Shown in pieces: positions 29,973 through 35,600 of a DNA stretch of 64,000 nt. Every line of letters starts with the position of its first letter. The stretch's first letter is position 1. The DNA comes from Piromyces finnis finn (Eukaryota; Fungi; Neocallimastigomycota), in contig MCFH01000001.1 in NCBI GenBank assembly GCA_002104945.1, positions 558,001-622,000 on the forward strand. The letters are read 5' to 3'. Below the pieces are notes generated by a model, which did not search any database, was not told the origin of the DNA, and saw only the letters and a program-made list of their open reading frames with translations. Made by a program: the position numbers and the translations under genes.

Positions 29973-32901
29973 ATGGAGACCCAAGAGATTGATAATCTGA
30001 AACAAGCTCTGAACAATAATTTAGATCAATTAGCTCAAAATCAAAAAAATTTACAGGAAATTTCAAATTATTTCCAAGGTTTATATTGTGGTCAGACAAC
30101 TATTGATTATGCATCTACAGCTGTACAAGCTAAACAATATGTTGTTCAAGGTTTAAATTTAATTTTATACCAACTTAATTGTTTAACAAAGGGTATTGGT
30201 GACTACATATTATATCAAACTGGTGTTTCAGAAAATATTGGTTTTGAATTGAATATAGTTAATCATGTAAATAATCTTATTAAAATATACAATTAATTAA
30301 TAAATTATTAACAATTGCTCTAAAAATATATTTTTGTTTTTTTTTTATAATTTTAAATATTTTATAAAAAATTAAAAAAAAATATCAATTTATGTAATAA
30401 TAAATAAAATATTTTTGGAATAAAAAGAGAGTTAATTCAGGTCATGAATTTTTTGGTCGAAAAACATTTAGTTTCCAAAAACAAGCAAAACCTAATCTAT
30501 TTGCAAAAACAACAACATTAGAAAGTAAATATGAGTTATTTCAGTACTTAGGCGTAATAAAATATATATAATAAATGTTATTTATTAATTATTTTAATTT
30601 TACTATTACTGAAATAATAATGTTTTTAGCAATTTATTATTTGACAACATCTAACTGAAAATAAAATTTTTATTATATACCTTTTCATATTTGATATTAA
30701 AAATTCTAAAAGTTCCACAAAAATCAGAAGAAAAGTATGAATTAAAACTTACAGAATTTGATAATATTGGTGTTAAATTGGAAATGCCAACAAATACATC
30801 TAATAGAAGAACAATATGTAGTGATATGGGAAGAACATCAATGCTTGGTACAATTGGACACTTATCTACGAATATTGGAAATCAAGGATTTGGTTCAATG
30901 TACAATTCCGCACCACCAACTATGCCAAAGTTAAGTGATGTTTTTTCTCAAAATAACACACCACTTTCAGCACCTCCACAATTGGTACCACCAACAATTC
31001 CATCTTTATCAACAATGACTCCCCCAGCACAATTGTCTATGCCAACCTCTGCTCCACCACAATTAAGTATGCCAGGACAAATTGGACAATCTTCTGTCCT
31101 ACCACCACCACCACAATTAAGTATGCCAGGACAAACTAGTCAATCTTCTGTCCCACCACCACCACCACAATTAAGTATGCCAGGACAAACTAGTCAATCT
31201 TCTGTCCCACCACCACCACCACAATTAAGTATGCCAGGACAAACTAGTCAATCTTCTGTCCCACCACCACCACCACAATTAGGTATGCCAGGACAAACTA
31301 GTCAATCTTCTGTCCCACCACCACCACCACAATTAGGTATGCCAGGACAAACTAGTCAATCTTCTGTCCCACCACCACCACCACAATTAGGTATGCCAGG
31401 ACAAACTAGTCAATCTTCTGTCCCACCACCACCACAATTAGGAATGCCAGCCAATCCTTCATCAAATTCATCAGTACCTCCACCTCCTGCAGGTGGTCCA
31501 CCACCACCACCTCCACCTGCTCCATCAACCACAGCTTCAGGTGGCCCACCACCTCCACCACCTCCAGCAACAACTGTTCAAAAACCTGCTCCATCGAATA
31601 ATATGTCATTAGCTGAACAAATTGCAGCTATGAGTTTGAAGAAACAACAACAAAGAAGCAATCAAGCTGAAGGTAAATTAAAAATTTTTTAGAAATAATT
31701 ATGAAATTCTTATATTAATATTTGCATATATATAAATATTTATTCTTGGTTGGATAATAGCTGAAACAAAGAAGCCTGAAGTAAAACCTGAACCTGTTAA
31801 AAACAATTCTGAACCTATGTCAATGGCAGATGCTTTACAAATGGCATTTAAAAAAAGACAACAACAAGGTTTTATTAATAATATATATAATTAGAAAATT
31901 AAAGAAAAAACAACAATAATATTAACATTAAAATTTAAATATTAATATATATAGCATCACCAATTTCTGAAAGTAATTCAGTACCATTAACTTCAAATCC
32001 ACCAGTTTCTACAAATTCTGGTGTTCCTCCTCCTCCACCAGCTCCATCAGGTTCAGGTGGACCACCACCACCACCTCCACCTCCACCAGCTGGTGGCCCA
32101 GCTCCACCTCAAGCTAGTGGAATTTCAGCAGCTTCAAAACCTGCCTCAAAACCTGCACCATCAAATAATATGTCATTAGCTGAACAAATTGCAGCTATGA
32201 GTTTGAAGAAACAACAACAAAGAAGCAATCAAGTTGAAGGTAAATTAAAAATTTTAGAAAAAAAATTATGAAATTCTTATATTAATGTTTACATATAATT
32301 AATATTTATTTTTGGTTGAATAATAGATGAAATAAAGAAGCCTGAAGCAAAACCTGAACCTGTTAAAAATAATCCTGAACCTATGTCAATGGCAGATGCT
32401 TTACAAATGGCATTTAAAAAGAGAGGTTAGAATTAATATAATATAAATTTTAAATTAATTTTTATTTTGATATAAATATTTAAAAATTATATTAAATTTA
32501 ATAAATTTAAAGCTGCAAAAGCTTCAAGTTCAGAAGAAGAAAAGAAAGAAGAACCAAAACCTACTGAAGAACAAAAATCAATTGAAGAGTCAAAACCAAT
32601 TGAAGAATCAAAAACAGTTGAAGAATCAAAACCAGTTGAAGAATCAAAACCAGTTGAAGAACAAAATCCAGAATCAGTTGTTGAATCAACTCCTCAAGTT
32701 ACTAATGAAGTAGAATATGGTGACCTTGTAATCGTTTTATATGACTTCAAGGGAAGCAATCCAGATGAAATTGATATTACTACAGGTGAATACTTAAGAG
32801 TCACCAATTGGGATATTGGTGAAGGATGGGTATATGGTTACCGTCAAGGTAACATGGAACAAGTAGGATCTTTTCCAAAAGCATATGTTAAACGTGCTTA
32901 A
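29973..32901 (+). CDS. ABI: Abl-interactor (Abi)-family SCAR/WAVE complex subunit homolog with proline-rich region and C-terminal SH3, 7 exons (29973-30266, 30428-30524, 30713-31672, 31761-31868, 31955-32239, 32327-32425, 32513-32901)
   Basis: The N-terminus NLQEISNYFQGLY...AKQYVVQGLNLILYQLN matches the Abi pattern NLxxVAxYCExxY...TKxYTTQSLASVAYQIN. LKLTEFDNIGVKL resembles the Abi homeodomain-homologous region. SH3: IVLYDFKGSNPDEIDITTGEYLRVTNWDIGEGWVYG...GSFPKAYV. All junctions are GT-AG and in frame. Confidence 0.8.
31051..31450 (+). repeat. 54-bp coding tandem repeat (PPPPPQL[S/G]MPGQTSQSSV), 7 copies plus a partial copy
   Basis: Near-identical nucleotide units within Abi exon 3. Confidence 0.95.
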
Positions 32902-33346: not shown

Positions 33347-35600
33347 TTAATTGATATATGATTTTAGTTGATAATCTTTTATATCATCTAGTTCAAATAA
33401 ATTATTTTCAATAACAATTTTATTTTCAAGTGTATAAGCACTTTCTGTATATCCTAAAATATAGTAATCATTAAATATTATTTTTGTATTTTGTGGAGTA
33501 TCAATCCATGCTAATTCACCCTTTTTCATAATTACAATTCTATTACATAAATATTCAGCTTCTTCTGTTGAATGTGTTGTCATAATCGTGGTAATATGCT
33601 TTTTTTGTTTAAATTCTTTAATTAAATCCCATATATATCTTCTCGTAAATGGATCAATACCAGTTGTCGGTTCATCTAATAATAAATATTTTGGAGAAGC
33701 ACATAAAGAAATAATTAAGGAAAGTTTTCGTTTTGTTTCACTGTTAATATCACAAGCTTTTTTATTAACATATTTTTCAATTCCACAGTAATCTATTAGT
33801 AATGAAATAATCTCATTCATATCACTCTTTGAATAACCACATATACTATAATAAAATTCAATATGTTCTTTAACAGTTAAAACATTCCATAATTAATCAA
33901 ATTGAGAACAAAAACCGATCCCTACATCGAATAATTTTTTATTTTTAAGACTGTCGTTTCTATATATAACTTCATCTGTTGTTGAATTTATAATACATGA
34001 AATAATTGATATTAATGTTGTTTTTCCTGCACCATTTGGTCCTAAAAGACCTAAACATTCACCATAATTAACCCCAAAGGTTAAATCATTAATAACTCTT
34101 TTATATTATTTCCCACTTTTTTAATCTTTAATATTCTTTCTTCATTTTTATTTAAATTATTATCATTTTGAAGAGTTTCTATCTCTATTATTATTTTTAT
34201 TATATTGATAATCTTTTCTTATTTCATGAATTTTTAATGATACTGTTTTATATTCTTCACTATCTGTTTGTTGAATACTTTTATCTATTCTCTTCCATTC
34301 AAACAAAACATCAACGGGTCTATTATTTATTATTTCATTTCGTTTGCTAAGATCTTCAGATTTCCATTTTTTAGTAGCCTTTTTTTTGTTGTATTTATAA
34401 TTTTCAATAATATATAAAATAACTAGATAGACAATGCTTGAAATTATTAATATCAATATAAAATAATAAAGATTATATTTTGATGTGAAAAATTCAAAGA
34501 AATTAGGATATGAAAATTTTTTAAATGCTTTATTATAGAGTTAATTATAAATGTCATCATTTTTATGTTATTCTAATTATTTATATTATTCACTATTCAA
34601 AAATCTTATTATCATTTTGATATATTTTAATCGTTGTTATTATTACAGTTTTAAATAATATCTAGAAAATATATTTTATATAATTAATGATTAATTATAT
34701 AGGATAGGAGAATACTTAATTAACTTTTGAAAAAATAGTTTATTAAATATTGATATAATAAACAATTAATCAACCATAATATTATTATTAACTATGTAAA
34801 TGGTAATCCTTTATAATAAAATATCGACATATCCGTAGCAATACCAAATACTGAAATTAGTAATATAGATGAAAAAACACAAAAAATATCACTGAAAATG
34901 ACACTAAGTCAATAATTAGTAGTTTTCTTTCCATTTAGATGTAATTGGTGAGTAATATTTTCTTCTTTTTCCTTAACCACAGAAGGACCATAAAGTGAAA
35001 TTAATAATGAAAGCATAACACCAATTTCTGTAACAATAATTGTTTCTATTATAAGATTAAAATAATATTGATATATACTATTATCGTTATCATTTCCTTT
35101 ATAATAATTTTCTTCAAAAAATGAAAGTTTGCTTTAATTTTCAAATCATTATTATAATTTTAAAGAATTGCATTGCTCATAAGATTTACAGTTATTGGTA
35201 TAGAATAGATAAAGTCATCATTATGAAATAATGTAATATTGAACGAATTACTACTTATATATCCTTGAAATCCACCAAGATATTTATTTTTATTATCAGT
35301 CATATTGGAAGTTAATGATAATTCTTTTTCATAATTTATTGTTATATAAATTAAAGTGTTAGCATTGTCATTTTTTTTAACAATGTCTAAACCGTAGCTA
35401 TCTGAATTTGATTCTATAAACCATTTAGTTTCATCATAAATGTCTGGGGATATTTTTATATGCTTTAACTGTTGGTTTATAATATTGAACTATAATATAT
35501 TTACCAATTAGTAAACAAGCAATAGTTATTACAATAGGAAAAATAACGGTAATAAAAATCACAGAATTACAAAGAAAGTACTTTTAATATCTGGATTTAC
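33347..35600 (-). pseudogene. ABCA-subfamily ABC transporter pseudogene (TMD plus NBD)
   Basis: Walker A GLLGPNGAGKTT and Walker B LLLDEPTTGIDP are present. Lesions: in-frame TAA in CSQFD*LW (33893-33895), TGA in VKEKEE...LNG...NY*L (34909-34911), further stops in the TMD, a frameshifted segment near 34100-34190, and a signature motif eroded to INSETKRKLS. Confidence 0.85.

Follow-up and report, generated by a model that had tools for sequence, protein, structure and literature searches.

The window, by which we mean the whole 64,000-nucleotide stretch of Piromyces finnis DNA that was analysed, carries on its plus strand a seven-exon gene (29973-32901) with a product of 743 aa. Every intron of this gene is bounded by GT-AG, introns 3 to 6 are in phase 1, and the splice junctions were placed on the basis of canonical sites, the open frame and orthologous transcripts. 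The joined 743-aa translation served to set coordinates, to make local alignments and to scan for patterns; database searches with window sequence were made exon by exon and full-length database searches used natural orthologues as queries rather than the joined window model. The features of the locus are as follows.

29973..30266, plus strand: exon 1, aa 1-98, putative Abi N-terminal helical region, from an ATG start to a GT donor
30428..30524, plus strand: exon 2, aa 99-131 (last codon split), putative Abi homology region continued, with AG/GT sites
30713..31672, plus strand: exon 3, end of the putative Abi homology, Pro-rich array, polyproline and motif A copy 1
31568..32424, plus strand: tandem duplication (period 566/567 bp) in which 31568-31858 corresponds to 32135-32424 at 90-93% DNA identity
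31603..31656, plus strand: motif A copy 1 (MSLAEQIAAMSLKKQQQR), predicted from sequence as a WH2/GAB-like helix with a basic tail
31761..31868, plus strand: exon 4, conserved KPEPVK linker followed by motif B copy 1
31955..32239, plus strand: exon 5, second polyproline region followed by motif A copy 2 (32170-32223)
32327..32425, plus strand: exon 6, linker followed by motif B copy 2 (32383-32424)
32513..32715, plus strand: first part of exon 7 (32513-32901), E/K/P-rich spacer, net acidic, without Trp
32716..32901, plus strand: second part of exon 7, C-terminal SH3 domain (Pfam) and stop codon

In exon 3 the Abi homology region closes with the stretch 'TEFDNIGVKLEMP'. The same exon contains a conserved NSAPPTMP..PLSAPPQLVPP segment and an array of 7.1 x 54 bp at 98% identity (31054-31435), which encodes an 18-aa Pro-rich repeat. 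Motif A, MSLAEQIAAMSLKK, is encoded twice, at the end of exon 3 (31603-31644) and at the end of exon 5 (32170-32211), as is motif B, MSMADALQMAFKKR, in exon 4 (31817-31858) and exon 6 (32383-32424). A polyproline run lies ahead of each motif A and the SH3 domain is C-terminal to all four motifs. The initial annotation of this DNA had described two motifs in two copies each, after polyproline; all four were confirmed at their sites and are kept in three orthologues. The spacer in exon 7 includes a second array (32548-32671, 6.9 x 18 bp) encoding EESKP-like repeats, and leads into an SH3 domain that was recognised by Pfam (SH3_9, E = 4.6e-10; SH3_1, E = 1.2e-6) and is almost unchanged in sequence across the orthologues. 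The proposed order of Abi N-terminal region, Pro-rich region and SH3 is borne out.

When exon 1 was the query of an exhaustive HMMER search, all that came back was a pair of close protein fragments, with no distant Abi among them. The first, P0001, comes from a metatranscriptome and is a spliced contig whose GC-rich 3' end is chimeric, and the second, P0002, is a piece of genomic sequence that shares its first intron with the window gene; exon 1 is 64-69% identical to the two. A metagenome scan with exon 7 yielded L003, a 2390-bp transcript whose 669-aa ORF is uninterrupted, and L004, a 5'-truncated copy, and a word search with the L003 ORF added P0003 (698 aa, JGI) and P0004 (682 aa), the latter being the Anaeromyces robustus hypothetical protein BCR32DRAFT_270732. 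Exon 2 has the same junctions in L002, a genomic fragment, and in P0001 and L003, both spliced transcripts. A further candidate, L005, was rejected as a relative, being an unrelated E-rich repeat protein. Word-index searches with the orthologue N-termini gave no orthologues beyond these close ones, and a word-index search with the module region produced 16 candidates, from which only the two known orthologues passed, so that it revealed neither a donor family nor any further protein family with the module.

The double cassette, in the same order, is present in three orthologues, namely A. robustus BCR32DRAFT_270732 and two rumen metatranscriptome transcripts. The carriers are anaerobic gut fungi, in agreement with the earlier description of the host as a zoosporic fungus, and four lineages, the window's included, have both copies. 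All three full-length relatives share the order Abi-like N-terminus, Pro-rich repeats, A1, B1, polyproline, A2, B2, E/K/P spacer and SH3, and the genomic locus of A. robustus has the same seven exons, with motif A ending exons 3 and 5 and motif B lying in the small exons 4 and 6. Identity is 61-64% between the window protein and the other three and 75-77% among those three, and the four motifs form near-invariant islands amid variable Pro-rich sequence. Since three orthologues keep all four copies in the same order, the four-motif pattern is far beyond chance.

The identity of the N-terminus was pursued with Pfam, PDB and language-model searches. The only Pfam match to the seven exon pieces, P0001 and the full L003 ORF was SH3, and with these queries Abi_HHR (PF07815) gave no match at E <= 10. 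The Abi homology region takes up parts of three window exons, and the Abi family is very diverged here. While exon 1 alone had no phmmer match in the PDB, phmmer searches of the PDB with P0001:1-230 and with the L003 N-terminus placed Abl interactor 2 of the WAVE regulatory complex at the top (3p8c_F, 7usc_E, 4n78_F), with E = 0.02-0.04 for 3p8c_F and 7usc_E. Profiles built from the N-termini found Abi2 in the PDB at E = 0.0031 with three orthologues and at E = 0.0012 with four; profile positions 24-152 were colinear with Abi2 residues 23-151, exon 1 falling within the colinear alignment to Abi2 of the WAVE complex, and the matches that followed had E > 0.4. An Atlas language-model search with P0004:1-175 ranked an Abl-interactor cluster first (PF27594 ABI, PF07815 Abi_HHR) with a score of 0.91 and 208 of 256 features shared, and each of the ten best family-bearing matches belongs to the same family or clan as the top one. 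The same search with exon 1 alone was discarded, its neighbours being generic helical hairpins (WXG100-like) below 0.9. A precomputed table lists a faint PF27594 ABI match for P0002. An AlphaFold model of the N-terminus has three long helices at low confidence (pLDDT 50), and the top three PDB entries that Foldseek returned for this low-confidence model were Abi2 (E = 0.13-0.33), which is weak agreement. The N-terminal matches, together with a Pro-rich centre and a C-terminal SH3, thus make it very probable that the window gene is an Abi orthologue. The Abi homology claimed for the N-terminus in the initial annotation was upheld, the PDB profile matching Abi2 only and Atlas putting Abi clusters first.

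Abi is usually regarded as a scaffold, and we know of no WH2-like or connector-like helices in canonical Abi. The window protein resembles Abi1/Abi2 (PDB 3P8C chain F, 7USC chain E) in its colinear N-terminal helical region, Pro-rich middle and C-terminal SH3. In contrast to canonical Abi, however, it has two conserved helix pairs added between the Pro-rich region and the SH3 domain, and it gives no score with Abi_HHR.

The first helix of each pair, motif A, reads SLA(E/D)QIAA in 8/8 copies, identical bar one Glu-to-Asp change, and is a predicted helix with L-x-x-x-I type hydrophobic contacts as in the N-terminal helix of WH2. Pfam WH2 (PF02205) matched no exon piece and none of 10 module pieces, and the module profile had no match in the PDB. 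As a control, the VASP GAB peptide, which is structurally validated and whose sequence was verified against 2PBD chain V, was passed through the same Pfam scan and was also missed. Thus the WH2 HMM search, which had been put forward as a check, came back negative from a scan equally blind to VASP GAB, and does not refute a GAB-type WH2-like motif. When aligned directly, VASP GAB found its best site in the whole protein at motif A, in both copies, ungapped and with the pattern L-A-x-x-I-A-x-x-x-L-K/R-K. The score of 22 was reached by 116 of 5000 composition-preserving shuffles (p ~0.02) and is marginal. The Leu of LKK is central to the WH2/GAB actin contact, and this Leu is not conserved: LKKQ stands in the window and P0003, SRKR and SRKK in L003, and SKMR and SRMR in A. 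robustus. Of the WH2-like module claimed earlier, the conserved helix is borne out and the GAB likeness is marginal, the WH2 HMM gave no match, and the LKK Leu is replaced in two of the four orthologues.

AlphaFold2 applied to P0003:395-698 gave exactly four helices, one per motif, with the rest disordered; in these helices the best 10-residue block had a mean pLDDT of 77-86. The hydrophobic moments of the motifs were not above those of shuffles, and there was no signal for VASP GAB either, so we do not claim that the helices are amphipathic. The net charge of each motif core is +1 to +2. The WH2/connector reading of the motifs is plausible but unproven.

Set beside the Ena/VASP EVH2 region (PDB 2PBD chain V), the cassette is alike in having polyproline ~12-20 residues before a short helix of the L-A-x-x-I-A-x-x-x-L-K/R-K type, and in having a second basic helix 25-30 residues downstream of motif A. 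The 25-30-residue linker between motifs A and B is within the 18-40 residues spanned by GAB-FAB linkers (PMC3034019), and both GAB and FAB have been described as WH2-like (PMC3034019, PMC10340426). Polyproline of the profilin type, a spacing in the GAB-FAB range and the WH2-like nature of GAB and FAB led us to read the cassette as a candidate recruiter of actin or profilin-actin. In contrast to Ena/VASP, the protein has neither EVH1 nor a tetramerisation coil (full-length L003 giving SH3 only in Pfam), its orthologues do not conserve the KLRK-like Leu, its motif B is not significantly FAB-like, and its cassette is duplicated. Against the whole protein, VASP FAB (sequence from PMC10340426) aligned best at motif A rather than motif B, with a score that 503 of 5000 shuffles also attained.

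On this evidence, our main reading, to which we give a probability of about 0.45, is that the gene encodes the Abl-interactor (Abi) of a gut-dwelling anaerobic fungus (Neocallimastigomycota), a subunit of its SCAR/WAVE regulatory complex that is fitted with two putative actin-recruiting cassettes that are VASP-EVH2-like or WASP V-C-like. The ~150 N-terminal residues would be the Abi region that builds the SCAR/WAVE complex and the C-terminus the usual SH3, and between the two the lineage would have inserted, and then duplicated, a cassette made up of polyproline of the profilin-binding type, the motif A helix with its basic tail (SLAEQIAA..K/R), a 25-30-residue linker containing a conserved PEPVK stretch and the motif B helix ending in KKR (SMADALQMAFKKR). 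Each cassette may then act like the polyPro-GAB-FAB of Ena/VASP or the V-C of WASP proteins, catching actin or profilin-actin beside the membrane-bound complex and passing it to growing barbed ends, by which the SCAR/WAVE complex would gain a built-in monomer-delivery or elongation function. We infer that the Abi cassette may bind actin and may have an effect on filament growth.

The ancestor of fungi is reported to have lost VASP (PMC10406608), and a substitute built into the complex is attractive for that reason. The more specific proposal, that the gut-fungal WAVE complex has its own actin-monomer-recruiting, elongation-promoting cassettes, two per Abi and kept alike by gene conversion, in replacement of an Ena/VASP partner, is a tentative one that we consider somewhat unlikely as a whole.

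The alternative that survives best keeps the same Abi orthologue but takes the four conserved helices as docking or regulatory sites for a partner other than actin, which could be acidic membrane lipids, calmodulin-like proteins, another subunit of the WAVE complex or the SH3/Pro-rich region of the same protein. On this view, the likeness to WH2 and C would be no more than the common appearance of short Ala-rich helices with Lys/Arg behind them. This agrees with the negative WH2 HMM and PDB searches, with the variable LKK leucine, with a GAB likeness that is statistically marginal and a FAB likeness that is absent, and with the positive charge of each motif core; moreover, the C-domain pattern is short and loose, and by a rough estimate ~1/6 of proteins of such a size would contain it by chance. 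In contrast, each cassette directly follows profilin-type polyproline in a subunit of an actin-nucleating complex, which is the usual context of WH2, GAB and C motifs, the register with VASP GAB is free of gaps, and the spacing of the two helices agrees with that of GAB and FAB. A function of the helices apart from actin is somewhat unlikely.

A second alternative takes each A-B pair as a true V-C unit, so that, with the acidic spacer, Abi itself would be an Arp2/3 nucleation-promoting factor, replacing or doubling the VCA of SCAR. All eight copies of motif B match M/L-x3-L-x3-F/L followed by KKR, in the form M-x3-L-x3-F/L-KKR (M-x3-L-x3-F-KKR in copy 1 of the window), and the order of the two motifs, A ahead of B, parallels that of V and C. 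The general C-domain pattern has three large hydrophobics spaced by three, 2-3 K/R and a closing hydrophobic (Kollmar et al., PMC3298513). Three of these four elements are present in motif B, while no conserved hydrophobic follows KKR in the copies, so that the closing one is absent. The connector-like character assigned to motif B in the initial annotation therefore stands for the three hydrophobics and the KKR, found in 8/8 copies, but not for the closing hydrophobic or for an acidic/Trp segment. An acidic stretch without Trp had also been noted ahead of the SH3 domain, and this was confirmed, the 68 aa in question having 21 D+E, 9 K+R and 0 Trp. This spacer after B2 is net acidic, which speaks for this alternative, but is interspersed with Lys and poorly conserved; the 40 residues after B1 have 1-2 D+E and are not acidic, and no Trp occurs outside the SH3 domain in any of the four orthologues.

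When compared with the VCA of WASP-family proteins (N-WASP, Las17, SCAR/WAVE), the module is alike in its order of polyproline, helix A and helix B and in the hydrophobics and KKR of motif B. It differs, however, in being internal rather than C-terminal and in being without the closing hydrophobic, the acidic/Trp segment and a Pfam WH2 match. Because the acidic/Trp segment is absent, activation of Arp2/3 by this protein is unlikely, judging from its sequence, and is the weakest part of the earlier reading; a true V-C unit is accordingly improbable. An N-terminus unrelated to Abi, belonging to a lineage-specific SH3 adaptor with a coiled N-terminus, would be in keeping with the silence of Abi_HHR, with the two close orthologues that were all that HMMER returned for exon 1, and with Abi evidence that is throughout at E ~1e-3 or embedding-based, but is highly improbable given that three different queries or profiles match only Abi2, colinearly and from the same N-terminal start, that Atlas, a separate method, agrees on Abi, and that the domain order is that of Abi.

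The proline-rich regions of Scar and Abi are reportedly functionally important for protrusions, going by the title of a recent bioRxiv study (10.1101/2022.05.14.491902). A natural Abi with WH2/GAB-like helices directly after polyproline would allow the importance of monomer delivery by Abi to be tested, and would point to a route by which a lineage without Ena/VASP can rebuild such an activity. If the more specific proposal of a replaced Ena/VASP partner is true, the protein would combine the functions of a nucleation complex and an elongation factor in one natural fusion, standing in for the Ena/VASP that animal Abi recruits. If the helices do not bind actin, they would be a lineage-specific motif in an otherwise ordinary Abi.

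The duplication itself takes in the intron lying between the two motifs, A and B. An assembly artefact or a very recent private duplication was ruled out, both copies being common to the orthologues, and the duplication is older than the split of the lineages, since the full-length relatives share the order of the motifs and A. robustus shares the exon structure. The two module copies within one species are 77-91% identical, as compared with 67-80% for orthologous positions between species. In A. robustus, the exon portions of one copy are nearly identical to those of the other, but the intervening intron has diverged. That copies within a species are closer than orthologous copies, taken with the diverged A. 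robustus intron, indicates that the two cassettes have been homogenised by gene conversion, i.e. by concerted evolution. The cassette is a clean case of a short linear-motif cassette, duplicated with its introns included, that is kept uniform by concerted evolution.

The Abi gene of the window carries the following tandem arrays:

31054-31435, + strand: 7.1 copies of a 54-bp unit (98% identity), encoding the PPPPPQL(S/G)MPGQTSQSSV repeat of the Pro-rich region
32548-32671, + strand: 6.9 copies of an 18-bp unit, encoding EESKP(V/I) repeats in the spacer N-terminal to the SH3 domain

At the site of the first array, the orthologues from other anaerobic gut fungi carry another repeat, (A/S)MGGPPPPP, in about 10 copies. 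From this difference between the window and the orthologues at one and the same place, it follows that the Pro-rich array has undergone independent turnover between lineages. The spacer preceding SH3 in the orthologues is built of E/K/P/T repeats, which differ from the EESKP(V/I) repeats of the window.

The partial orthologue P0001 is encoded on a metatranscriptome contig (L001) that, at 1127-1270 and within the polyproline region, changes suddenly from AT-rich fungal to GC-rich sequence. The GC-rich part looks like a chimeric assembly end, and the final ~12 residues of P0001 are thus not real.

In Anaeromyces robustus, a microsatellite of the (ATATA)n type takes up the intron between motifs A1 and B1 (L006:7707-7868). 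The intron of the second copy is devoid of this microsatellite, and the exon sequence flanking the intron is near-identical between both copies.

A 669-aa ORF (L005:595-2604) was rejected as a relative, being unrelated. It contains long (E-E-V-Q-S-L)n repeats, and its low-complexity resemblance to the acidic spacer was the sole reason why it had been picked up. An ORF at window 33347-33820 on the - strand encodes LLLDEPTTGID, a signature of ABC-type ATPases (Pfam AAA_21, E = 1.2e-7), and is probably a single exon of an ABC transporter gene convergent with the Abi gene.
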